The notes: generated by a model not told the origin, from the letters alone. DNA of 64,000 nucleotides from Kudoa neothunni (GCA_964304625.1 OZ199838.1:12405843-12469842); one strand, 5' to 3'. Counted from the stretch's first letter, positions 9,101 to 63,700 are shown. Numbers and translations are program-made.

Positions 9101-12100
9101 TTCATATTAGACATTAAGTATGAGCGAGTGTTCGCGTCAAAAAATTGCAATAATACGGCAATACGTTTAAATTTAATATCTGGAGACGTAGTTATAGGAT
9201 TGGAAGAAGATTAAAAACTTTAATAGATACGATTCTGTTTTTTTCGTTTCATATTAAACTAGCGTTTTTCTCTTCCTTGTATTTTTTTATTTAACCTTCT
9301 AAATAAACTGGGGTAGATTTCTACCCCAAGTGAATTTTACCAACAATATTATAGTGTATACATGGAACATAACTCATCTCCGCTTTTTGTAAACTTATAT
9401 CTTTATGGAAACTTTCAGAAAAATGAGTTAAAGTTTTTTTTGTCATATATCAAGAAAGTTAATCTAAAAACACCTTCCAAATAAAATTAATTAAAATATT
9501 GATACATATGATTTTTAAGACTTAACGGAAATTCTATCGAGTAAATAATAAATAAATAACGTAACACTATAAATGCGACCCCATCACGCACGCGTAACAC
9601 AGATTAAGCATGTGGTTCTCTTCAGAATACGATAGCTCCTTATTCTCTCATTAATCTTATACCAGCTATTCAAGATACGATGACTTTTCATCAGTCTGCT
9701 TAATTCTGCGTTGTAGAGAGCGTCCAAAAATATGTATGAAAATTGTTAATAAATATTCTTAGTTTCGTATTGTAGAGAGCATTAAATAGACGTATGACAA
9801 CTTTTTTGTGAATTAAGCACTGTTTATCATCATGTTGTGTTTTTCTGCACAGTTTTACACTGGGTTGTTTAAAATAAGATAAATTAATTGGCGGCTGTTA
9901 TAAAAGTTGAATTAAGTATTAAAACTAAAAAACCGCAGAAATGCGCATATATATATATATATATATACAATCGTAGTCCATGGAAATGTAAAAAACATAA
10001 ATATTCGCGCACGCGTGGGTAGATTATATCTTTAATAATTTGTCATCTATTCGAAATTTACTCAATGAATTTTCCTCATATTTTGTGAGTCAATCATGAA
10101 TTTTATTTGAGACAATTTTATAAAATAAAAAAATAGGGTAGATTTCTACCCTATTTTTACTTGGAGGGTGTAAATTTTTCAGCTACTTAGAAGGCTAAAC
10201 TTTTTTTCTGACCGTTCATCGTTGGATTTTTTTAACCCCACTGGCGGCTCTGTCCCAAATATCACACACGCGTGCCCAGGTTCGATTTTGATCCCAGCAA
10301 TTCCTATTTTAAATTTATGTAAAAAGTTTATTTTTTAGAATTTGCGATATTTAATTATTTTCGGTCAATTGTTACCACTGTTAAAGACGTGGAGTAATTT
10401 GCTAGTGTCAAAAGTACACTCACTTGAATAGTATGACATACACGGGTGATCAAAAAGTATCGAGACTTTTTAAATAAAAAAATATATACAAATATATAAT
10501 GAATTTTTTTTAATCTCCTTCGAAATACTCTCCGTCTGCATCAATACATTTTTTCCGGCGTTGCTTCCACTGAAGGAAGCATTCTAAAAAATCATCTTTA
10601 TTCAGCGTCTTAAGCTGCTCCGTCGCATTCTGTTTTATTTCCTCAACGGAGTGGAACCTCCTTCCTTTAAGTTGGAATTTAATTTTTAGGAATAGAAAAA
10701 AGTCGCATGGAGCAAGGTCTGGTGAGTATGGAGGATTCTGTAGCTGGGTAACGTTCATCTTGGCTATAAACTCTTGAATTTTTAATGACTTGTGTGAGGG
10801 GAAATTATCGTGATGAAGTATCCAACGTCCAGAGGAATTCATGTGGGGTCGTTTACGACGGATGGCATCCGTAAATTCCGCAACACTGAGGTAATACTCA
10901 CTTGTAACTGTACAAGCGCGTATTCATAATAAATTAACCCCTGGATGTCAAAAAATACTGAGTAACACTTTAATTTTACTCCGAACTTAGCGTGCTTTCT
11001 TTGATCTGGGCGACGATGGTGTTTTCCAAATGGAAGATTGAACTTTTGTTTCGGGATCATAACCATAAGCCCACGTTTCATCACCTGTTACAATAAAATT
11101 AATGAATTCATCGTCTGTTGATGAGCGTTGAAGTAGATCTTTTGAAGTAATAAGCCGCAATTCTTTTTGCTCGGATATGAGCACTCGCGGGACAAATTTG
11201 GCGGCAACTCTTCTCATACGAAGATCATCAGTCAAAATAGTTCGACATGATCCAAAAGATATTCCAACATCATTAGAAATTTTCCTAATGATAAGTCTAC
11301 GTTCGGAATCGATCATATCCTTAACATCATTAATCTCTTCATGGTTTCTGTTAGTTAAAGGTCGACCAGAACGATCCAAACTATCAATCGAATTTCTAAC
11401 TTTTTGAAATCGTTTATTCCACTCAAGCACTCTACTTCGACTCACGGAATTGTCTAAAAATGCTTTTTTAATCATTTCATAAGTCTCGGTACTGTTTCTC
11501 CCTAGTTTTACACAGAATTTAATACAAATTCTCTGCTCGTGGTTTTCTGACATTCACGCGAGCGACATCGGCCGATTTCGCGACTAAAACAACTAGCTGC
11601 CATATTTTATTTTATTATTCATTCGTTAAATTGTTGTTGCAAAAATATGCGAATATATATTTTTTATAATATTCTATTTTTTAAAAATATATCTTTGTCG
11701 TACCGGGAGATATTTAAAAAGTCTCGATATTTTTTGACCAGCCCATGTATTTCGATAGTCACATTCTTTTAAAATATAATAATTTATTTCTTCTTTTTTT
11801 CAAACAGAATTCTCAGATGTTTAACTAATGAACACCAATTAGAATTTCCATAACCCTTTTGTATAACTTCTCAATCTAGTTCATCATTTGATTTCATGAA
11901 ATTTTCGAGAAAATATTTTTAAATGTTGATAATGTGACACATTTGACTGTTATTTTTGACTTTTATCAATTACACCAGTACTACAAATCTTCTTTCACAA
12001 CAAATTTAAATGTATTTATGCGTAAACCTACGTTATTTAAGGTTTATATGATTTATTTATGGTGTCAAAATATATCACTTAAATTGAATAGAGAGTTTAT

Positions 12101-18721: not shown

Positions 18722-20773
18722 AGAATGGGGCTGACAACATCGCCTCTACAGCCGCGAAGGAACATTCCATCTTAACCAATCGTTTGTGTCGGCGATATTT
18801 GGTTCAAAGGTTTCTATCAATGGTCCATTGTCAATTACTCTAGCACTTTCTTTTCTCTAATAAAATATAATTACTTAAGAGATTGGGCTTAATTTTTTAA
18901 ATATCAGTGATTTCTTTCTTCCTCAAATTATATGTAGATTTGAAACTAAAAAATAAATACTTTTGGCATTGAATGATGAGGCATAAGACACTAAACAATG
19001 TTTATAAATATGTTTTGTGGTGATTACGTATTGACCAATGAGGAACATTATGGTGGAAATTATCAAAATTCGCTTTATGAATTCAGTTTTGTAAAATGCC
19101 ATATTCGCAAAAATTATAGAACTTGAAATATCAATTATTACATCTCGTATAAATAAAGGTACTACACAACGAGCGTAAAATTCATTGATTATAAAAGTTG
19201 GACACCAAATAATAAGATGAGATAAAGTTTATATTCTTTCCAAACAATTATATTTCCCTCGACCTAATCATTGCTTACTATAATTTTGAGTAAATTAGCG
19301 GCCAATTTAACCAGTTTAAAATAATAATGTTTATTTAATTAGGATCCATATAGAAATATAAGTGGTTTTATTTTGATTAGTTATCATTACTATCTCTAAG
19401 AGAACAATACCACATTTTATTTTCGTTTTATCTTCATAATAATTATATAGGAATTATAAACATACAAATGGATGTATGATCAAGTATAACATACGTTATC
19501 TATCAATACTGAATATATATCATATCGATGAAATTGTCCAGAACAAATTCTTCCATAAATCCCCTATTCACAGATAAAAGAATAATTATTTTCCTATGAA
19601 TAATAGTATTATTTTCAAGTGATAACTAAACAACCAATTATATACCAAAATTTATTAAAATTTTCGTTAATTTATAAAATAGTTGCTATAGTGAAATATA
19701 TTATAAAACCAACTAGCGATTAGCAAGCCACTCCTACACTGGCTTTAATCCTGGGGTTGGCAACGACAGGCCGGGAGCTTTCCTCATCCGGTCCGCGAGG
19801 ATGGGTTAATAATAAAGTTAAATTGTTTTTTGATCGGACGGAAATTGTATTATTTACCATATTTTCATAATCAATCCTTTCAGCGCATAAGGACGCTTAA
19901 TAGCAATATAAGCAATGTTAATGAAATATTATCTCTCGTTTTCTAAATATAAATGTGTAGAAAACAAAATAAATCTCAAAATACTCCCCTAATCAGATTT
20001 CTCATTTATTTTTACTTATTGTATGATATTAGTCTTATATTGACGAGTGGAAACCTTTAACTATCGTTTTTAAATATTTTGAATCATCATTTAATTATAT
20101 GAAATATTAAATCCAATATAAATAAAATAGGTAAGTTTTGAATGAATAATTGTATAAAAATAACTATTCTCCCCTAAAAATATGCCAAGCGTTAGATATT
20201 ATTTTCTGGAATTGTAATGGAAATGTATTATTTTAAAGATCAAAATATAAATTTACCACGCTAATTTTCAACTGTATTGTGAAAAATTCATTACATCGAA
20301 AGGATTTATATATATTCTGGCCCTCCTTCTAGGTCAGCATGACAATCAGGCTCGACAATCTAATCGGGTTGTCGACCCCTGCTTTAATCTAATAAAAATG
20401 AATAAAAATGTTTAATTAATTCTACTACAATAAGAGGATATTTAAAACATTAAAACCCATTCTGATAAAAGATATTATTTTATATAAAGTTGGATTTTTT
20501 TGAACCAATTCTATTATTCCTTGATATATTGATAAATTAGGCTGGCTATGCTTCATATCCAGCGTGAAATTTTCTTGGGATATTGACATGAAACGAACAG
20601 CGATTTATATTTGTTGTAAAATTAAATATTATTTTCACGACTACAACAAATATTGAGATATTGGTTGTAAAATAAACGCACTGGAAAATGTAATATAGAA
20701 TATTAGAAAACAATTAACACACTTAGATGTAAGCTATTAATAATTGTTCTATTTTCAAAAACGAAATTTTTAT

Positions 20774-23700
20774 CTAAGAATTAAAAACATGAGATGATGA
20801 TTGGTTTGGACTCTTCCAGTTTTTGTAGGAAAGTATCGCTAGTAGTGAGAAAACGGAGAGACCAACTACGCTGACACCGATTGGTATATGGCTAAATTGT
20901 ATAAAAATAATATCATTTTAATTTTTACTTGTTTGAATTTTTACTCCTAAAACACATAAAAAATTTAACACAAATAAAAGCATGCTTACGCTGAAATATT
21001 TTCATCTAGTAATAAATTAGATTATGGTTAATTTAAGTTATTGATTTACCTTCTATGTCAATTTCGCCGCTTATTGAACTGAATTTCTGATGTTTGACGA
21101 CAAGTCTAAGACTGTTTGTTGCTGGAACGTTACGAATAACAAATTTATTGCAATTTGGAAATCCATCTGAGCAACCATAATCATCATCTTCTGAACATTC
21201 CAAGTGGAACGAAGGATTGGGGTTGATTTCATAAAGCTCAAAGGTACACTTAGGGTCCTCATCTAGCGAAGGAGGTAAAACGCTTGTGATTGTTAATGTT
21301 AGGCCAACTCTCTCCACTTTTAGCGATATTCTTTGAGCTATTGGAACGATTTTAAAGCATTCAACAATTACGCTTTTTATTTTACTGGTCGCTATTTCAG
21401 GGGGTTCCATATCATCTTTTTGAGTGGGGGGTCTTATTGTAGTTTCTGTTGCGGTGACTATGGGTGGATCATTATTTGGTGCTTGTTGAATAGTATCAGA
21501 GTTCACATCTGTATTGACAACTTTAGCTGCACGTTCATATCCAGTAACCTCTTGAGGTGAGTGCTTATTTACTGGCTCAGGATTATCGTTAATTTTGTAG
21601 ACATTAGGTTGGTCATCTTCACTCGTGCTTGGTTTAGGCCCATCGTTTCTAACCTCATGAGATGCTGGAGGCGGAACTGTCTGGAAATCACTAGTTACCG
21701 TTTGTGACTGCTTATTTTCATTATTAGAAATTTTATCAGTCGCACTGCTTCTGTTCTTATCATTTGCATCGATTTCAAGATTGGTTCCAGTTTCTTTTTG
21801 AGTATCCATTGGTGGCACCGTAATGGATTCTATTTCTTCAATAGTATCTATTCCCAAAATATTCAAAGGGTCGAAAAAGCTTCCATAGATATTTTTAGGA
21901 GGCTGTAATGTTGTAGAAATAACGTCACTATCATCGTCGGTATCGTCTCCATTATCATTATCACTCTCAGTATTATCCTCGTTAGAAATAAAATCATTGT
22001 AATAACCATCTTTATCGTTTCTTTCAGTGTCTGATACCACATCTTTCTGGTTATCAGCTGTTGACAACGATCTGGTATTGTCATGGTTTGACTGAGGTGG
22101 AATTTCATAGGTAATTTCATCAGTGATGTCCATTGCATCAATTCTTAATCTATAACTCTTAGTGAAGTCTTGTGTATCTTCAATTAGGATTTCATTATCG
22201 CAATAAACATAGCATTCTATCGTTTGGCCTCCATAACGATCTCTGCAAGAATGGAGTGGTAGGAAGTGATCCCCTTCCGAAATTTCCAATACGTACCTAC
22301 ATATGGAATCTTTTATGTATGTGCTTAATTGAATATTAATATAGATTTTATCGTCTCTATAGGTGTGAGAAATTTCAAAATTAATTTTACCTACATATAC
22401 ATATATAATATTAAATAATATACGGTTTAAATGAGGCTACCAGCTTTTAATGTAGCGTGAAAGGGTCTGTATATTTTTAGAGGGGTTATTCGTATGTCAT
22501 ACATGGTGTCTTTTTGTAAATTTTCTAGAACAACCGAATCTTTACATAACCCCCTACAGGGCGTGATGTTGTTGCATGATGCTCCGTAATATGAGTTTCC
22601 ATTAGACGGTTTTACCTCATAAATACATGATAATTCACTCAACTTTTGTCCTACATGTTGATATCGATTCACTATAATCTCAAAACCATCCTCAGTCGGT
22701 GTCACACGTTCAAATTCAATAGGGAAATTTAGTTTCCTCTCTATATTAAATATTAGATGATGTAAAGTTATGAGGAAATTACCCCTCTCGAACAAGAATT
22801 GTTGTGAAAACGATTTAGTTACAGGAAGGTGATGTTCTTCGATCTCCAATACCATCGGCCCATCAATCAATAAAATACTCACCCACTGAGTAATTCCACA
22901 TTGGTCTTTACAAAATGTGAAAAAATTATTATCTTGACAAAACGGTTTGTTGGTCGACTGAGGTTTCACATTAGCTGCCGAATAAATCTTCAGTTCGCAT
23001 CTACTGAATTTCAATGTCGAATCTGTCGGCATTAAATCTTGGGTATTCACAACTAAATGATGATTGGTTGCCTCTACTATGATTCCTGAATAACCGTTCT
23101 TTAAAACTAAATTATCATTTAACAAAATAATGATTGGTTTATTCTACCGTAATAAATTTGTGAGTTTCCGTCAACATCTGAGTGCACGTCATGTTGGCGT
23201 GTTTGAATGAGAACGGTTACAATTTCGGACGGTTTTCGGAGCGTTAATGCAACCCTATTACATAGTGAATAACAAAATGAGCCAGAATTATTATTTCCAC
23301 AGTTAGATTCAAACGGGTTGTGTTGGTCGGTGATAAGAGCAGTTTTTATTTTGAACAAACATATTTCTGACGAGTCTCCGTCTCCACCTTGGGCTTCAAA
23401 TACCAGAACATTTTTGTTGGTTTCATTTTTATAACTGGCTGTATATTTCGTGCTGAAAATCTCTATATTTTTTTTCATGTATGCGTTAGGCATAAAATAG
23501 TAAAATTTAGGGAGGTATTCGCATTTGATCCCATAGTATGGTAGAAATGGGTCAAACTTGACAAAACCTCGTAAATTTGGCATTAACGTTTGTAAACTAT
23601 CCTTTCGATTCAGAATCAAATCCTTATAACCCATTGTACATACTTCATCAATTCTGGAATCGATTGAAACATGAAATTCTCCCTTATCGTTTACTTCGGT

Positions 23701-24224
23701 GAATAGACGGGGTGTTCTTAAAACACCTAATCAAAAGATAGAGAATAACGATAAAAATAAAATTGTTACTTTGCTCTAAACCAAAAACATATGCAGTTGG
23801 TTGGTTTGTGTGATCCACAAAATGAACCCCATTCTCCTCTTGAATGAGATTAAAATATGTGCGATCAACAAACATATTTTGGTCAGTAAGAATAACACTT
23901 TTTTTGGAACATTTGATTTCACATAGAGTTTTGCCGTGAAAATCTCCACCTGAGCATTTATTGATATTGATGTACAAACGGGATTTCTGAGAATATGTCA
24001 TAAAACGACATGTTTCTTTTTTTATATCTATGTTGTTTATTGTCAACTTAAAACTTGGCTCAATCCTGTCTTCAAGTTTTTTCACGACTAAAAACTTATC
24101 GCAAGAGATATTGAGTTGGCATATCAAACCTTTAATATACATATATATTTTTTAAAAAAATTGAAATCCTGTAAGTTATACTTATGGAATGAAGCAAATA
24201 CCACCACAGAAATGTATTGTTCAT
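20774..24224 (-). CDS. large type I membrane protein (paralogue A): signal peptide, tandem four-Cys beta-rich domains, ~250-aa acidic S/T/P linker, C-terminal TM
   Basis: Exon 1 MNNTFLWWYLLHSIS|LICQ, then phase-compatible GT-AG joins through the 23684, 23119, 22427 and 21033 ORFs. Last exon HIPIGVSVVGLSVFSLLAILSYKNWK...NS*. Confidence 0.8.
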
Positions 24225-25012
24225 TGTAGTTGTATGAAAATCAATTATACCTTGAGCCACCACATCGATAACTAAATTCGCCTTCGGTCATTTTCCTATC
24301 GAACATTGAACAATCTTAATTAAAGTTATTTTGACCATATATAGCCCAAACTAATTAAAATGATGTTTCATTTAAAGTTGAATAAGTATTGTTTAAAAGT
24401 TTTGATTTTTCTCCCTCTTATCTATCAAACACAATTTCGCTATAATCCGTATAATTTGGGGTATTATTCCAACCATATTTATTTAAAATCTTTAAAATTA
24501 TATTAGATAATTACTGAAATCATATTTAAGTATAATTTCCAATCTTATCAAATATCTATTATAATGATTCCATTATGTAATATCTTGATTTATAATGGCT
24601 CATCGCATAAATCTTACCACTGAAAAGTATTTAAAATGTAATCAAATATCTCATACATAAATTTTTAATGAAATTTATATAATCAAAGCTATAGTTTGGT
24701 GTTTATTTAATTATTCATTTATTAATGATGAAAGTTTCAAACTATTAACTTTTCCTTAAAATTAATAATACAAACACTAATCTATTAAATAAAGCAATAA
24801 TAAATAGATTTTTGATTAAGTTTGTGATAAAAATTGATCTAAATTTAATATTTCATACAATTAGAAGACATTAAAATACTTTGGCATATTTACGAAACAA
24901 AAACAAGATATACACGTGATCAAATAATAATTTCGATGACATTGTTTATGATCGATTAGTCATTCGGGCTAGAAAACGGATTTATTGTAGATGATTAGAT
25001 ATGTAAACAAAT

Positions 25013-26030
25013 TTAACCCTCTAATAATCCCAAAAACATTGAGCGTGTAATGGACATTAGGCTAAAATTTACTCCACATTTTTTTTGAATTATAACACTT
25101 TAGAAAATCTAATAATCAATATCTTAGAATAATTTTTAATTCCTATGGATGAAACACTGACAAATGCATATTAAATTTAGACGTAATCCACGCGATAATC
25201 GGCTTCGTTTACTATCCGTCTTATGTTGGTACACATCGATGTTCATTAAGAAAGTAATTGCGTTAATTTAGCGGATTTAAACGTGTTGCGCCAGTTAGAA
25301 TATTAAAACAAAACATAAGAAGAATTCTTGAAAGTTACGCGAAATTAAAACAATTTTAAATGCGGTAATTGGACAACAAAACTTATAACAATTTTCGTAC
25401 CACTTAGAAGATTTTTTATCATTTTTCATCTCATTGTATCCCCATGTTTCTCGCTTTGCATTAAGAAGAGGTTCCTGTTTGAGGGGGGAAGGGGGCATAA
25501 ACAATGCCGAGACCTGTTTTTATTGCTTTGTTTGTGGACTTTGTTGTCAACAATGCTTTGTTTAATTGTTCAACGATTTCTTTAAGAAAATCGCGCATTT
25601 TGATTTATTGGGAACATAAGATATCAAAATATACTTTTAACGAAATACAAAAATGCTGCCACAACGAGCTCTATTTGGTGATGATTGGAGGCATGGTGGT
25701 ATCTCCAATTTTTAACGTAATGTCTCTATGGTCAATTTTTTCCAACAATGTTTCAGCAAGAAACACCGATAAGAAGACATTTTTGTCCACAACATGATGT
25801 TTATTCTTTGATAAACAAAATTCATCAATGAAATCATTAGAATCACCTATCTTCATATAATTTGCGCATTGGATTTAATTAATTTATCTAACATTTTTTT
25901 ACTTTCTATAAAAACTACTCATAGGAATTTTATTTGATTAAAGTTAGAAGTGGTTTACATTTTTTGAAATATTTTTAATCCAAAAATATATGGGGTAAAT
26001 TTTACCCCAAAGACCATTAAAAGATAAAAG
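25013..26030 (-). mobile_element. internally deleted piggyBac element
   Basis: TTAA-CCCTCTAATAAT left end, decayed right end with GGGGTAAATTTTACCCC. Remnants RDFLKEIVEQL and a Cys-rich tail ENCYKFCCP. Confidence 0.6.
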
Positions 26031-27609
26031 AAAAATTAAAACTTATACAATAACTTACATAAACAAATTTTTTCGTCAAACCAAAAGAAAAATTTATTAG
26101 AAGAATAATTGGAATCTATTAGATATTGGTTTACTGTATAAAGCGATGTACCATCAATAAAATCGTTTTGGGGTAAAAGAAGAGGTCAATCGAAACAAAT
26201 TTATTAATTTTAGTCGACTTTATGGTTATAGGCCGTGTCTTAATTTAAGAATGTTCACTTTTTATTTGGGAGTATATTATTCACTCACAATAGTTACAAG
26301 AACTGGCAGTCTTAATTGATCGATTTTGTTGCAACACCTTCTAAGGATGCCTTTGTACAATTTATGCTGAACTGTTCTATTCCATCAACAAAATTATTTT
26401 AAAAATTATTCCAACATGTATATATATTCGAAGACAAACTTCGATTTAAGTCCGGAATCCAATTCACATGTATAAAAGAAAACCTGAGCAGTGTTATGAG
26501 CTTCTTTTGTAAATCTGTATCTGGGAGTCGTTCAGATCGTCGTTTAATTTTCCATCGCATGGATCAATGATTTTTTAATAACGTTAAAAATTTACCCATT
26601 CAATTTGAGTTTAAATAATAAAGCCGAAGCGATAAATGAATGATTGGAAATATAACTAATTTGTTAAGATGGTCATTTCAAAAGTATGGTAAAAATTTTT
26701 GTTATATCTTAGTAATTCCATTTTCAACGATGAAATTAGGTTATATAAGTTCAATCTAGTATTTTTCAAAAATTCGGCAACCTACCTAAAATCTCCCAAT
26801 CAATGGGTAATTTATCTATTGAACTCCAACTATAAAAATATTACACTTAAACCCCAAATTATTAAAAAAAGGGAACGATATTAATGCAAAACCACCAGAA
26901 TTTCTCCAAACCATGTTATAAATATAAAATCTTGGCGTAAAGTATCAACAAACAACAATTACTTGCTTTAGAAAAGCCAATTTAAACGAATCAAATACAT
27001 TATATATAATATCCATTATTAATGCCAGGAAATCTTAATTTGTATGTGTAATAATTCTATCTACTATATTTCGAATGATTATATTTAATTCTTTCTCCTA
27101 ATAGGTATTAATTACGGATCAGAAAGTGGAAACGACGAAAATCGATTAATCAAATAGAACGGGTGATTTAATAAAAACCTCAAATTTTTTAGATAATAAA
27201 AATTTTTTGGTTAATAGAGAGGTTGGGTATTTTAAAGAGCTTAAATAAATTAGACAAAAATTCACAAATAAAACTGTCAACATTTGAACCTAAGAAATGT
27301 AAAAAGTTTTCTAAATAAATAATAATTTAAAAATTAATATAATATTTCTTCAATATAAAAACTTTTTATCGTTTGCACATCCATCAAAAAGTACATCAAA
27401 TCGATTAGGGGTTAATTTTTAATATATATTTTCTGATTCCAGAGACGGTGAATTATGGAAACTTGAATAACAAATCGTATACTATTATACACTAATTTTT
27501 ATAAACATTGTTATAAATTTTCCTAGAAAAATATTTATACAAAAACAACAAAATATTGTGTAAATAACTATATTTATTCATAGTTAAAAACATAAATATG
27601 CGATATTAT

Positions 27610-30393
27610 TTATTGGATATCTGGTATTTCATCTACAAAATCTAAGAAAAATTCAAAAAATTATAAAGGCTCTTACCCATCACTATAAACGTCCCAAAAA
27701 CGCTTTGATCATTGGCCAAGGCTACTTTTAGGAAAAATATTTTTGTCTTTGAAACATTTAAAATAATGAACTCGTTACATAAAGGGATTCCATCAGAGCA
27801 ACCTTGGGTCGAATTCTCATTGCAAAATAAAGTATTATCGTTTTCATTATTTGAACCAATCTCACGCAGTTCCCACGAACATTTCTCATTTGAATTTACT
27901 TTGAACGACATTTGAGATCTAATTTTTAAATCGTCACCATTTCTCGCAACATTCAAATAGATTTCTAAATTTATAAATAAATTAACATTACATAGAATGG
28001 AACATGAACAAACTTTTGGGTGAGGATGTCACATTGCGTGTGGATTGATCCCCATCGTTGTTATTTGTGATTGAAGTAGATAAATCATTCTCTGGAAGAT
28101 CTCTATATTCTATAATAATAGGGGAGGCCTTTCTACGTTTTCTAGTTTCTAAAAATTATTCTAAATTCAATTTCCTATAGAATGAAAAAAAATACTTTTG
28201 GTAGTAGATGTAATAATATCGATCGGTATTTCAGTGGTTGGAATGTTTTCAGGAGGTATCACATACGTTCCCGATAGTCCTAATTGAATTGCGTTTACTT
28301 GCACCATATATTGGTTATTATGACTATAGTGTTGGTTAAATTTTATTTGTGAGTTGCAATAAGTTTTGCAATCGTTTTCAGAGTTTTTCAAAGCAGAACC
28401 ACATGTTTGCAAAGTTTCATATTGTTCATTTACGAATTGGTATAAGTTGTAGTGACATACTTGCTGAGTATCGAACGGCTGTAACTCTATCGATATAACA
28501 GCGTAATTTTGGTGAGTGTTGTAGGTATGTGAAATGGATAAATTCATGGGGTCTAATAAAGTGAAAACAGGAGAAGAATACATAGAATTACGTGTTTTTA
28601 ATTGTCCTAGAATTAAGGGTCTATAGTTGAGAGTGTCAACTTTAATATCATATACTGTGTCAGAATCTAGGTCGATAATTTGAACCGGATGTCGGCATGA
28701 TGCTCGACAAGAAATAGCGTGCTTGCATTTCGCTTCAACGTATTGATCTTTTGACGCCCGACTTACATAATAAGAACAGGTCAGTTCATTTAGAATCAGA
28801 TTTGATTGAAGAGGAGTTTTCATTTCTACCATAAATCCATCACTTGTTGTCTGAATGACACTAGCATTGAGCGGTAAATTTGGAACAATTCCTGTGGAAT
28901 TGTCAGTTAACACGTGAATAAACCAGTTTAAAATTTAATACTTTTTGCAACATAATATTTATTCACAAAATTATAAGTTGTAGCCTGGTATTTGTTCGAG
29001 ACTTCTACAACAAATGGTCCTTCAATCCGTTCAATGGAAATCACTTTTATCTCGGTGCAAAGGTCGTTGCATTGTTGTAGATTGTCCGACACTTTACAAT
29101 AAACAGCCGTTTTCTTTTTTGGTTTAATTGAATTGGCGTTATAGATTTGAATATCACAATTTTTAAGTTCTAGATCTCTAGGATCAAACATGAAATTTTC
29201 ACCCTTTACAGTCAAAATTTCCCTGCTTACAGAATCGGGTGTTACTATTACATATTTCAATAAAAAATTCCTCATTATTTAGTTTTACCATAATGTGTTT
29301 GAATGTACCCATCATCATCCGAATTCACGTCATGAAAAGCTTTTTGAATAAGTACTGTGACAACAGTAGTAGACTGGTCAACAGTTATCCCCACATCCCC
29401 ACAAGGGGCGTAACACTGAGAAATGTTCATGGCTGCACCCGTACAATTCGACAAATAAGGCTTGGAAAAATCGGAAGCTATTGTATTTTTCACTTTAAAC
29501 AAACACATCTCTCCTGCCAAATTGTTTCCGCCTTTAAGAAGCATAATATTTTGCTTGTTAATATTCTTATATTTGGCCAAGTATTGTGGCTTGAAACTCT
29601 CTATATTATCTCGCATGTAAGCGTTAGGTAGAAAATAGAAGAGAGGAGGGGCACTGCTGCAGTTGATTTGATAAAACGAGATATATAGTAAAAAGGATAG
29701 TCTAATACTGTCGAGTTGATATTGTGAGCCTCGATCCCCAAAGTAAAATTCACCATCACTCATTACGGAGCATGGAGTGGGCAGGAAAAATTTTGTTTTT
29801 ATGAGCAGATTTTCTGTATCATGATCTACAATAGAAACTGTGAATGGAGGTGGTCTCAACTGCTCTAAATTTTTACGGTGATTAATTATTAGATCATCCT
29901 ATACTATACCATGGGTTAGGCCTAAAACTACCCCTCCTTTGTAGTATTTGGACGGAAATAGTCGCTCATCACGCCTGGACTTCTCTAAAGTCACTAAAAA
30001 TATCTCATGCACGTTTTTTTGGAGGTGAATGTATTTAGCAGTCATGAGTTGTTTGACTTCGCGTATATAAAAAGATTTATCATCACACCTGAAGGTACAA
30101 TATGGGTATTTGAGTCTTTCATTAGTCTCACAGTCTTGAACATTTTCGAAACCAGGGAAAGGACCGTCTGCTAACAATATTCGGCATTTCATATCATTTT
30201 TATATTGGGGTCCCTCAACTTTTAGATTATATTTTTTAACACCATTCACATAGGTTGGCGTCAAAGTCAACGATGTTTTGGGGCTTGCAACACATTTTTC
30301 CAGCCAATCTACAATAATAATATTATTTGCAGCCATTTTAGGTCTAATACCTGTAAAAATAAACACATAAAAATAGAGAAAAATTATTTTCAT
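27610..30393 (-). CDS. paralogue B of the four-Cys repeat protein; short linker, no TM segment found (predicted secreted)
   Basis: Colinear with paralogue A (FYFLPNAYMRDNIESF vs FYYFMPNAYMKKNIEIF; GCSDGIPLCNEFII vs GCSDGFPNCNKFVI), with shared intron positions. Last exon reads DEIPDIQ*. Confidence 0.8.
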
Positions 30394-36876: not shown

Positions 36877-38448
36877 TTAGGATGTTGTTATTGTGGATGA
36901 GAGTAGTTGACTTTTTAAAAATTCCCAGTATCCTTTTCTCACTGGGTCTATAATATTGGCGAGCATATCCATCGATTTCACAGTGAATTCGTTGGTGTAT
37001 GTTTGATCAGCATTGTTACTGTTGTGATTGTTGTTGTAGTAGTAGTGGGCCACAAAATCCAATTTTAATCTTCTTATGTCATTGTTTGTTGGAGGGTAAT
37101 CGTCAAAATTGAGTTGTTCTTTGAATTGTTGTATCGTTTCGAGTTGAGTGAGATTATCGATGTATTTAAATAACCTATGTTGCCATTTCAATTTGAAAAC
37201 AATAACAACAACAGATAGGACTATCGTTGGTATGGGGAATAATCTTAAGCCTGAAATTAGAAAATAGTTAGTAACGACGTAGAATCTAGCTCTACCGAAT
37301 TTGTAGTGTCTAACTCGAATTACTACAATAAACTATTGTCGCGTTGATTAGTGAGTTTAGTACCCAAACAACAGAAATGATATTAAATATCCTCCATTAT
37401 TGTTAATATCTTAAACATGAAAATATGACGAATTCAATACCAATACGCAGATTTTAAATTGACGACATCTAGTCCCATAAACATAAATTTTTAAACTACG
37501 TAAGCTTATCTGCGCATTAAACATATTTTAGTATTTAAAAGAGACCCTGTACCAACGACCATAATTTTAGTTTAATCAATGTATCAGACAATAACCCCGT
37601 CAAATAGTTCCACGCGCATTCATTGTCGGGGTTCATCTTAAGATGATAATCCACAATGTATTGGAGTTCATTTTGTAGGATGGCTTTGTTCGAAAACTCG
37701 TTATTGTGAAGCATAATTTGATAACGAAAATTCCACACACTGTTATTGTAGGGATCATCTTTGAGTTGTTGTTCTACCATTTGCATTTCTTGAACATTGT
37801 TCCACATTTTGAAATAATCCAGCAACCAATAACGATATTGCCAAGCATGATAATTTTTGGTATCCTCGATTAGCACCAAGTCGCAGAATTCGAATTCTCC
37901 ATCGGGACTGTCGAGTATTTTTATCAACTCCATTCGATGGTACCTAACAACCGAATGAATTGAAAAAAATCATCCCCACAGAATAAAATCGCACCATAAT
38001 TGGTACACTTTCAAATCATTTAGTATCAGTTTCGAAACGAATTTCAATTCTGCGCGTACATCTTTGTTGAGATGGTCCAACAACTCTCTACGATGTGACC
38101 TACATTCACGTATTCTAGTCGATCCATTTTGGTCACTAACAAAGAAATATACCACAGTGAGTAGTTGGCGAGGTTTTGATCGATCGCGTCAGTGACTAAC
38201 TCAAAAACACGCTCGCTTTTCTCACCGCTTGCAACCACGGCTTTGTAATAACCGAATATATCAAGGTCTAAAAAGGGCAAACGCTTAAATTACACCAATC
38301 CACCAAAACTATTAATTTTACATTTATCGCTGTACACAATTTGACAAATTGGAATATTAATGTCGTCCAATGGAAGTGGTTTCACATCACTCCACTCTGG
38401 ACGATCCCTATAGAATATATAACCACCCGATTGCATCGATTGCGTCAT
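36877..38448 (-). CDS. FNTA: protein farnesyltransferase/GGTase-I alpha subunit, 5 exons
   Basis: YRDRPEWSDVKP, IVYSDK, EKSERVFEL, PFTA repeats (NYSLW, KNYHAWQYRYW, DPYNNSVWNFR, NECAWNYLTG) and DPVRKGYW. Confidence 0.95.
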
Positions 38449-60707: not shown

Positions 60708-63700
60708 ATGCAGGATTTGATTGACGCCAAATTAAGTTATCTGTATTGTTTAAAATTTTTTACTCCGCAGTTTTAATTTTAAAGTCACAACTACATTAGA
60801 TATGAAACAACGGGTGTTTTGATTAAGCCGTTGGTGAGTTACCCGAAATTCCAAGTATTTACTTTGATTGATGATCTTGTACTAACATTTTTATAACATA
60901 AAAAGTTGAGCCGAGATGAAAAATACATCGTTACTGTATATGAAGATAAAATTCAGATGATTGATCATTCTACAGGCAGATTGTTCCAATCATTTAACGA
61001 TGTGGATGAGGTTTAAATTATTCTTGTTCCATTAATCTAATTGTTTTTTATTAGAATATAAATGAGAATAAATCCAAAAACAAAGATGATGATGATGATC
61101 AAATTTACGATAGAGATAACATAAACAATTTTGTCATGGGCAATAACAAAAACCTCCTTGTAACCGTGTCCTTAGACCAGCTGATTCTAAAACAATGGGA
61201 TCTCACTCATTTCAAATGTGTTCAAACATGGAAAGTAATCATTTAAGTTGCGAAATTCTCTCGAAACTACGTTCTTCTATAGTCGTCACATAAACGCCTA
61301 ATATCTGCAATGGCTATCGATGGTACAGACACTCTCCTAGCGACGGGTTCTTCTGATAAGACTATAAAAGTATGGGATTTGAACAAACGATTCTATACAC
61401 ACAATCTTAAAACTGTGATTGGATTGGTGAACTTACTCAAATTCCATTCCGCTCCCGATCACATTTGGTTGGTGTCTTGTCATGATGATTGCAATATTAG
61501 AGTTTGGGACCTTCATGCTCGCAGTTGTATTGTTCAGTTTGAATCACATACCAGTCCTATTAGTTCCTTGGATTTCTTGAATGATGGATTAACCATGATT
61601 TCGTTTGGTAAAGACAGTCTCATAAATCTGTGGAATATTGACCAGTTGACCAACAACAAAATCATCAAATACACTGATGAGATAGAATATGGTCAGTTGG
61701 TTCCACCGACCGTGCTTAAAGCTCTCAATTTCGACGTCACCAAATTGTGTGTGATAGTTTGCAATAGCAAGGGTGAAATTGAAATTGTTCAACTGGATCC
61801 AATGGAAGTAAAATTACGGATGGCAGTCGGTTCAGCTACTTGTGCAGTGAAATTCTGCCAATGGTTGCACAGCGCTGAATGTACATGTGTTGTTGTTACG
61901 AGTGATTTGGATTTTTTGACCATCAATCTGTTTACAAAATCAATCGTGAATCAGGTAATTATTTATCATATATATTTTGGTTTGATGAATCATATTATTG
62001 ACAGTTCTGTGGCAACCTCAACGAAGTTATCGATGTAAAATATCTGCCAAACAGCAGATTAGCTTTGGCTACCACTGTTGAAAATATAAAAATTTACGAT
62101 ATGAGTGATCCAAATGAGATCGCATGTGAACAATTGCTATATGGACATCATGGTGAGTGTTCTTTTGGTTCTTCTATTAATCACCATTATAGGAACTGTT
62201 ATGAGTCTTGATTGCACAGAAGATGGATGTTATTTTGTTTCAGCCTCAAAAGTATTCCCACTAATAGAATCGAACAGAAATCATTTAATTGTTTCAGGAT
62301 AACAGCGTGCGAGTTTGGAAAAAAGATTTTAACAATTCCAACTATGAGCTCTGTGCTGTGGGTACTAGTCATATGCATGCAGTTAATTGTGTTGCTATTT
62401 CAAAGTCAAAGTATTTTGGTTGATTGAATGTAATGTGGGTTAATTTGTTGCTTAGAGAAAGTTCCTATTTTATTGTCACTGGTAGCGAGGATACCACCGT
62501 TAAAAAATGGTTATTTTCTTCGATTACCAACCAACAAATTTCACCTGAATGGACTAGCCATGTTCATCAAAAGGTATCATTATACTTTTAAACTTGTTAA
62601 GTAAAGAAGTAAACTGAGATCTGTTTGGACCTCATTTTTCTCTTTTTTTTACACGATTAAAGTCATTACTTGTATTTAAAAACGATAAATCGAGTTGATA
62701 AAAAATTAGATTTAAATAGCCCTTACACATTCATCCAATTTTTTATTTTTTAGACATGTAGTAATGATAATATTAGCATTTATGAAATCAAAATCTCATA
62801 ATTATTTTATTTGAATGGATTGAATTTGGATAAAATTAAGATTATTCTGTGGTCGTCTTGTACATATTCCTTCGATGGTTTTCTCCGATATTTTTATATA
62901 AATGTGAAGAAATATATTTGTAAAATGGTGTTTCTTGTTTAAGCGATATTTAACTATGTTTTGATTAAAAAATTGATTTTTAACATAATAGCTTTGAGTT
63001 ATGTGAATATCTAGCATTTTAAAGTAACTCACTTAATTACTAGTGTCTGAAAAATTTAATGTGAGTACAAAATCATTTTGATTCAAGATTTAATATTTTT
63101 TGCAAAAATATATAAAGAAATGTGAATTAAGCGTTTTTGGGGCCTGATTTCGGCGATATTCGAGGTTGCATAATGCATGAAATTTTTACCTTGGTTATTT
63201 TAAATGTTGTAAAATTTATTTTTAATTTTAGACAAATAAATTTAGTGAATTTTCTATTAATTATATTTTTTGAGGTTTTAAGAGTGATTTCCGTAATACA
63301 TTATTATTAAAAATTAATCCTCAGAAATATCGTCGTTTTGGCTGAATTCTTAAATTAATTAAAATTTTGTGGTAGACGAAAATTAAGCGTTTGAATAAAT
63401 GAAGTAGTTGTGCTACTTTGTATTGATCACTTAGTTGTATAAAATATTCGTTTAAAGCTTGATATAATTGATTTATTTTTTAAATTATGTAATAAAAGTT
63501 TAATTTATCGGATACACAAAAATAATCTCAACCAGTTGTATACATTTTTTGTGATATTTGAGGAATTGGATTATAAATGAGTGAATAGTTGTTAATTTTA
63601 TTACACATTTTATTCATGTGTTAAGGGGTCGCGAAAATGCTTGACTTTGTTTGGTAAAATTCAAATAATTATATTAACTCAAAAAAAAATTGAGTTCCAA

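Follow-up and report, generated by a model that had tools for sequence, protein, structure and literature searches.

What are the two neighboring genes, here denoted A and B, that lie on the minus strand of a 64-kb stretch of the genome of Kudoa neothunni (OZ199838.1:12405843-12469842; the whole stretch is hereafter the window), and what could a myxozoan parasite need them for? Myxozoans are extremely reduced parasitic cnidarians, and to our knowledge, their surface molecules are almost wholly uncharacterized. A first-pass annotation of the window described A and B as a pair of surface proteins built from four-cysteine repeats of an unrecognized domain, and assigned them to a lineage-specific, fast-evolving family at the interface with the host. 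The reading that we favor, with a probability of roughly 0.6, is that A and B are intact genes derived from an ancient duplication, which form a divergent branch of a Kudoa-lineage family of type I membrane proteins with fibronectin type III (FN3)-like modules and serve as adhesion or recognition rods.

Two paralogous proteins with colinear cysteine-rich modules

Gene A spans positions 24224-20774 of the window (minus strand, 8 exons encoding 1026 amino acids (aa), introns of 41-98 nucleotides (nt)), and gene B spans positions 30393-27610 (minus strand, 8 exons, 823 aa, introns of 35-50 nt). The gene models were obtained by joining open-frame pieces at numerically enumerated GT/AG pairs that preserve the reading frame, and the spliced frames were then confirmed to be open; all searches and structure models described below were run on single exons, the joined proteins being used for the frame check and the motif counts. 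Each protein contains exactly six matches to the pattern C-x(16-19)-C-x(5-10)-C-x(3-6)-C, which are colinear between A and B and have, in order, the spacings 17/10/3, 19/8-9/3, 19/8/3, 16/5/3, 17/10/3, and 16-18/7/6; in 5000 residue shuffles, the mean number of matches was 0.05 and the maximum was 2. A further unit with two cysteines (T1b) precedes the second four-cysteine unit in both proteins, and the order of the modules in both is T1, T1b, T2, T3, T4, T5, T6. The models, motif counts, and shuffles thus bear out the six four-cysteine units and one two-cysteine unit that the first-pass annotation had assigned to each paralogue, and the FN3-like motif that it had noticed in one of the units is present in T4 of both proteins (LDSDTVYDIKV in B and LQKDTMYDIRI in A).

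The cysteine columns are conserved in the alignment of the 12 units, which pair one-to-one between A and B, and a hidden Markov model (HMM) built from these units, a check that the annotation had proposed, recovered the same 12 units in the window and nothing else. We considered treating the 12 units as a single uniform repeat and dropped this description: the units fall into six distinct types of module, and each type is orthologous in A and B and recurs throughout the family. Profile-profile comparison with hhalign strongly links T3 to T4 (E 7e-15) and T5 to T6 (E 4e-14), and moderately links T1 to T5 (E 1.6e-4).

The exons, all on the minus strand, follow the modules closely. Both genes open with a 43-nt exon that contains the start codon and encodes a hydrophobic N-terminus (MNNTFLWWYLLHSI in A, 24182..24224; MKIIFLYFYVFIFT, a probable signal peptide, in B, 30351..30393); the first intron of gene B (42 nt) is itself in frame, so that splicing at this site is presumed. 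T1 makes up exon 2 (A, 23770..24129; B, 29910..30308; spacing 17/10/3 in both), T1b and T2 share exon 3 (A, 23148..23726, T2 spacing 19/8/3; B, 29289..29864, 19/9/3), and T3 is encoded by exon 4 (A, 22783..23106; B, 28942..29244; 19/8/3 in both). In gene A, T4 (16/5/3) follows in exon 5 (22441..22740), and exon 6 (21050..22390) encodes T5 (17/10/3), a 240-aa acidic linker rich in Asp, Asn, Thr, Pro, and Ser, and T6 (16/7/6). In gene B, T4 (16/5/3) and T5 (17/10/3) are joined in exon 5 (28196..28891), the linker is reduced to 45 cysteine-free residues in an exon of its own (exon 6, 28014..28148), and T6 (18/7/6) is encoded by exon 7 (27677..27964). All junctions in the modeled genes are GT-AG, and every exon past the first one begins in phase 1. 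The claim that the introns fall at matching positions holds for five of them (after the 43-nt exon 1, between T1 and T1b, T2 and T3, T3 and T4, and after T6) and fails for three, namely, the intron between T4 and T5, which is present in A only, and the two in B that flank the short linker exon.

The two genes differ most at their 3' ends. In gene A, a 16-nt mini-exon on the predicted splice path (exon 7, 20990..21005) links T6 to exon 8 (20774..20891), which encodes a transmembrane (TM) helix IGVSVVGLSVFSLLAILSY followed by a 16-aa tail KNWKSPNQSSSHVFNS and the stop codon, and matches in place and type the TM exons of the paralogues described below. Combined with the hydrophobic N-terminal exon, this helix predicts a type I membrane protein, so that the product of gene A appears to be membrane-anchored; if the intron after the mini-exon were retained, the protein would end in ...DENISA and have no anchor. 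In gene B, the predicted splice to exon 8 (27610..27641) gives a short tail that ends in ...DFVDEIPDIQ and a stop codon, without a membrane anchor. An alternative last exon (27484..27567), in frame if exon 7 joins it directly across a 109-nt intron, encodes a weakly hydrophobic tail VIYTIFCCFCINIFLGKFITMFIKISV with a Kyte-Doolittle value of 2.18, compared with 2.6-3.4 in the TM exons of the family. The terminal TM exon with a short basic tail is clear in A, with a weak candidate or none in B, and the description of the pair as surface proteins is overstated.

A cysteine-stapled variant of the FN3 domain

The fold was modeled from an alignment of 29 sequences (A2) that comprises the T4+T5 exon of gene B, the T4 and T5 pieces of gene A, and 26 paralogous exons. 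The AlphaFold2 model consists of two beta-sandwiches, with a mean predicted local distance difference test score (pLDDT) of 73. When searched against the PDB with Foldseek, this model returned 354 matches at E≤1e-3, the highest-ranking of which are without exception tandem FN3 domains, including those of NCAM, fibronectin EDB-8, neogenin, titin, and cytokine receptors. T4 alone superimposes on a titin FN3 domain (VIA Z 9.9, root mean square deviation (rmsd) 3.0 Å over 91 residues) and on an FN3 domain of Ihog (VIA Z 9.6, rmsd 2.6 Å). Sequence profiles point in the same direction: among the 25 listed matches of the T4 profile to PDB sequences at E≤1, 23 are FN3 proteins (titin, 8.5e-5), and the profile aligns the E-F-G region, with the LxxDTxYDIxV motif, to titin, Dscam, fibronectin, tenascin, and NCAM2 (E 8.5e-5 to 0.04). 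The T4 modules of both A and B conform to the tyrosine-corner pattern L-x-P-x-T-x-Y-x-[IV]-x-V in the E-F region, and ESM language-model features likewise point toward fn3 clusters. Pfam fn3 matches 24 of the 29 A2 sequences, all below the cut-off.

In the T4+T5 model, strand C carries the first cysteine and C' the second one, with the CxxxC pair immediately preceding strand E; two disulfides probably form around the C-C'-E face of the FN3 domain. The resemblance to FN3 (Pfam PF00041; NCAM, contactins, titin, fibronectin) extends to the size and topology of the module, a seven-strand beta-sandwich of about 100 aa with an L-x-x-x-T-x-Y-D-I-K-V pattern, to the tandem rods that form ectodomains of type I membrane proteins, and to the phase 1-1 exons that each encompass roughly one to two modules. 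In contrast to the canonical FN3, which has no disulfides and carries a tryptophan on strand B, the Kudoa modules possess four conserved cysteines and lack this tryptophan (there is none in the consensus or the invariant columns of alignment A3, and the entire proteins contain 4 tryptophans in A and 2 in B), and they score below the Pfam cut-off. In place of the unrecognized domain of the first-pass annotation, the models indicate a divergent, cysteine-stapled variant of FN3, detectable with profiles and fold searches, and not a new fold.

The strength of this assignment, which agrees with the FN3/Ig-like sandwich that had been proposed, differs among the modules. The structure models support the FN3 fold for T4 and T5. 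For T1b and T2, an FN3/Ig-like sandwich is more weakly indicated by the gene B model, which is less confident (pLDDT 68) and consists of two sandwiches that resemble IL-17RA, the G-CSF receptor, and OSCAR. For T3 and T6, a sandwich fold is predicted through profile homology to T4 and T5. In Foldseek, the T1b+T2 model is closest (E 3e-4 to 1e-3) to IL-17RA and the class I cytokine-receptor module (G-CSF receptor, IL-2R gamma), which likewise consists of two tandem FN3-like domains with conserved cysteines; however, the cysteines of A and B are located at different positions and occur in every module, there is no signaling tail, and neither WSxWS nor a relaxed form of it is present in the A and B protein sequences.

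A large gene family in the K. neothunni genome

The assembly searched here consists of 40.26 Mb in 4 contigs, with a G+C (GC) content of about 30% and introns of about 45 nt, in line with the published description (40.2 Mb, three chromosomes and a circular mitochondrion, 30.4% GC; 5,316 predicted proteins, median intron of 49 bp; data derived from yellowfin-tuna sequencing; PMC12239612). What seemed in the window to be a private pair is one branch of a larger family, which numbers at least about 200 genes and in which the order of the seven modules is fixed. A six-frame search of the genome with the T4+T5 exon of gene B yielded 150 scored matches out of 343 candidates, on all three chromosomes. 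All 150 scored full-length matches of a T1b+T2 profile (alignment A1) are at E≤1.8e-73, and 143 of these 150 are stop-free, with 433 candidates at first look; the search with the gene A exon added about 50 loci, and 149 of the 150 matches listed there are open. The number of intact copies in the family is therefore at least 150 and about 200, possibly around 400 (427-433 candidates). Many of the members form tandem arrays, as judged by their genome coordinates. Neither gene families nor fibronectin come up in the genome paper (PMC12239612), and in the literature on Kudoa FN3 and myxozoan FN3 gene families, we found no description of this seven-module family.

We retrieved 27 other loci, and in all of these, the order T1-T2-T3-T4-T5-T6 is preserved over about 2.6 kb; a terminal TM exon located 150-190 nt downstream is clear in 25 of the 27. 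The family members and A/B thus have in common the module order, the four-cysteine framework, and the exon plan, and gene A has the same type of terminal TM exon. They differ in several respects. T1b contains four cysteines in the family (KTC-x-x-V-x-CP ... C ... YEMRC) versus two in A and B; gene A has a longer cytoplasmic tail and the 240-aa acidic linker; and A and B lie outside the family arrays, show no sign of gene conversion, and each have an orthologue-like relative in another species. Within the genome, gene A is closest to gene B, with 43% identity over T2 only (37% in T1b-T2), and among the matches listed, the identity of A and B to any other copy reaches about 47% at most, over part of an exon only.

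Two features of the paralogue 3' ends deserve a mention in their own right. The stalk between T6 and the TM exon consists of one or two mini-exons of about 16-22 nt flanked by GT-AG introns (loci L004, L012, L020, L022, and L028), and such mini-exons are easily missed by gene predictors. The tails after the TM helix are 3-6 residues long (for example, ...FVVFKKKN and ...GYWKNKG), and in many paralogues (L003, L006, L009, L010, L012, L014-L016, L020, L021, L023, L024, L027, and L028), the protein ends right after the helix in a KKxx-like sequence (...KKKN, ...KKRN, ...KKKRD), with lysines at -3 and -4 or at -3 to -5, the pattern of the endoplasmic reticulum (ER)-retrieval signal; gene A has no such ending.

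An old duplication under purifying selection

A profile search that exhaustively covered 1.84 billion representative proteins produced 21 matches, of which 20 are real and all are singletons from ENA or Logan contigs; the remaining one, P0018, was discarded as a low-complexity repeat. The six relatives that we looked up come from five samples and from contigs with 21-37% GC. For the two contigs that were compared, DNA identity to the K. neothunni genome is 73-77% at most, indicating that these relatives stem from other, related organisms. The proposed lineage-specific distribution is accordingly upheld, given that the exhaustive protein search recovered nothing except contigs from AT-rich relatives. 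One of the relatives, P0008, is located next to split SNF5/INI1 exons and a ribosomal S14 gene on contig L034 (Logan SRR31175926, 7256 nt, 20.6% GC), which implies that unannotated genomes of related AT-rich parasites with short introns are present in public read sets; these neighbors of P0008 (the SNF5 exons and ribosomal S14) have no counterpart in the window.

In the tree of the T1b-T2 exon, A groups with P0003 (58% identity over 189 aa) and B groups with P0007 (51% identity over 164 aa), with Shimodaira-Hasegawa-like approximate likelihood ratio test (SH-aLRT) support of 96 and 99, respectively, and both pairs fall outside the clade of all 25 sampled paralogues. The two-cysteine T1b is common to A, B, P0003, and P0007, and marks a separate sub-branch. 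The pairing across samples implies that the A/B duplication predates the split from those species and is therefore old.

The first-pass annotation considered the family to be fast-evolving, and this part of its description is overstated. The ratio of nonsynonymous to synonymous substitution rates (dN/dS, Nei-Gojobori) is 0.27 for A versus P0003, at dS of about 1.0, and about 0.22 for B versus P0007, where dS is saturated and the value is descriptive only. These ratios point to purifying selection on A and B, not to rapid diversification. Among paralogue pairs with dS of 0.05-1, which are mutually dependent, so that the values describe rather than test, the median dN/dS per module is 0.14-0.38. 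The comparison of loops and strands that had been suggested gave 0.43-0.62 for the segments between the cysteines versus 0.21-0.39 for the framework, none above 1; T6 is an exception in that the C2-C4 segment alone is raised. Such values fit loosely constrained loops on a conserved scaffold. Of the disulfide-tied variable loop that had been postulated, the placement of the cysteines in the C-C'-E region is supported by the model, and the approximately twofold faster evolution of the inter-cysteine segments is seen in the paralogues. Gene-wide positive selection was rejected, no dN/dS above 1 being found in the sampled paralogues or in either orthologue-like pair.

Genomic neighborhood

The pair adjoins housekeeping genes and transposon remnants, not a family array. 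The neighbors include protein prenyltransferase alpha-subunit repeats (37535-37933, minus strand, E 9e-24), WD40 repeats (61310-62038, plus strand, E 4e-16), and a 188-aa open reading frame (ORF) (10987-11553, minus strand) whose match to HTH_48, a domain of Mos1-type transposases, exceeds the Pfam cut-off (E 3e-7) and which is probably what remains of a mariner-like element. Between genes A and B lies a dispersed repeat of about 1.15 kb (25030-26180), with termini of about 74 nt in inverted orientation (25039-25112 and 25955-26028, 73% complementary) and at least 40 near-full copies with 79-87% identity on all three chromosomes. No convincing ORF was detected within this repeat, which looks like a non-autonomous DNA transposon of the miniature inverted-repeat transposable element (MITE) type.

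Possible functions and alternative explanations

If A and B are adhesion or recognition proteins, each would enter the secretory pathway by means of the signal-peptide exon and would fold into a rod of seven beta-sandwich modules, six of these of the FN3 type with the four conserved cysteines tying together the C, C', and pre-E segments. The single-pass anchor at the end of A would hold the rod on the parasite cell, from the surface of which it would project outward and might bind a partner through the less constrained inter-cysteine loops. The contact thus mediated could be that of the parasite with the host muscle cell or that between parasite cells. The role of A and B at the host interface that the first-pass annotation put forward is one that we can only infer.

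Several observations weigh against this interpretation. The Pfam fn3 scores are only 12-17 bits (14-17 for T4 of the paralogues), compared with the gathering cut-off of 25; among the nine exon pieces of the window, Pfam gave nothing meaningful at E≤1, the best match being T4 of gene A (12.3 bits, E 0.2), and T4 of gene B itself has no Pfam fn3 match. The profile links among some of the other module types are weak (E 1e-3 to 2e-2), and for T1, the ESM Atlas features returned no usable match. The signal peptides and membrane topology of A and B are read from hydrophobicity only, and the link from T6 to the TM helix in gene A relies on the predicted 16-nt mini-exon, with several in-frame paths available. 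If the KKxx-like signal is functional, the paralogues that carry it would stay in the ER rather than reach the surface. Finally, three metatranscriptomic runs labeled with the host species contained 0 reads on 20700-26600, a segment that a DNA run covered completely; this is no test of expression, and per the genome paper, hardly any of the RNA reads from the host align to the parasite (PMC12239612).

Among the alternatives, one that we regard as unlikely although worth keeping in sight is that the proteins have structural or developmental roles without host contact, mediating adhesion between plasmodium or sporoblast cells or forming parts of the spore valves. Rods of FN3 domains typically serve in cell-cell adhesion and structural arrays (NCAM, contactin, titin), and the conservation of A and B across species under purifying selection also speaks for such a role; the difficulty is that structural functions rarely need several hundred diverged paralogues.

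The very size of the family, along with its mostly intact copies, numerous tandem arrays, variable inter-cysteine loops, and type I topology, invites the thought that the pair and its relatives are variant surface antigens, that is, a repertoire of several hundred genes for antigenic variation or immune evasion, with one or a few of them expressed at any given moment, and variant surface families have been proposed in another myxozoan (preprint 10.64898/2026.02.11.705288). There is a functional analogy, and only that, to the Plasmodium 6-Cys (s48/45) and Toxoplasma SRS proteins, which are large families of disulfide-braced tandem beta-sandwiches; the Kudoa proteins belong to the FN3 fold class, have a different number of cysteines, and are anchored by a TM helix rather than by glycosylphosphatidylinositol (GPI), and no s48/45 or SRS Pfam match at E≤1 was found among the window exons and the 29 A2 sequences. 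As for A and B, they reside among housekeeping genes without a close paralogue and have one-to-one relatives in other samples with dN/dS of about 0.2-0.3, there being no value above 1 anywhere. Furthermore, Kudoa plasmodia grow within muscle fibers, where antibody pressure is doubtful. Being conserved across species under purifying selection, A and B look like fixed-function members rather than variant antigens, and we consider this explanation improbable.

A receptor-decoy pair, in which A would be the anchored receptor and B a secreted soluble competitor for the same ligand, is a still slimmer prospect. The clear TM exon of A and the unanchored DFVDEIPDIQ end of the simplest B model would suit it; nevertheless, 37% identity between A and B in T1b-T2 does not imply a shared ligand, B has the alternative in-frame hydrophobic last exon, and A could itself give rise to a secreted form by intron retention. 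A broader proposal that draws on both of these ideas, with the several-hundred-gene family as the animal counterpart of protozoan variant coats, a diversified set of cnidarian surface proteins that would act in recognizing host cells or in immune evasion, and the conserved A/B pair as the ancestral anchored-plus-soluble founder module of its expansion, likewise strikes us as improbable. That A and B are not functional genes at all but decayed copies of a dispersed repeat that resemble genes is very unlikely and has been largely refuted: in a genome of which 45.6% is classed as repeats and which was annotated on protein hints alone (PMC12239612), a many-copy family could be masked, but both models remain open through 8 exons joined at canonical junctions, all 12 units retain an intact cysteine framework, the relatives from other species show dN/dS of about 0.25, and, as noted above, nearly all T1b-T2 exons of the family are stop-free.

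Implications

Returning to the interpretation of A and B as conserved members of a family of FN3-like membrane proteins, the consequences are of three kinds. If the family indeed consists of several hundred genes, it would amount to roughly 4-8% of the 5,316 predicted genes, and it could have been missed owing to the combination of annotation from protein hints with repeat masking. At the domain level, the modules would be a clear example of FN3 re-engineered with two probable disulfides at the C-C'-E face. What is new about A and B themselves is that they have no close paralogue yet have orthologue-like relatives in other samples; as a conserved single-copy branch, they may provide an outgroup for dating the expansion of the family and the simplest target for work on expression, localization, and structure. 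The family as a whole readily suggests itself as a candidate for the interface between host and parasite or between cells, and might be of use in diagnostics of a parasite that spoils tuna flesh.

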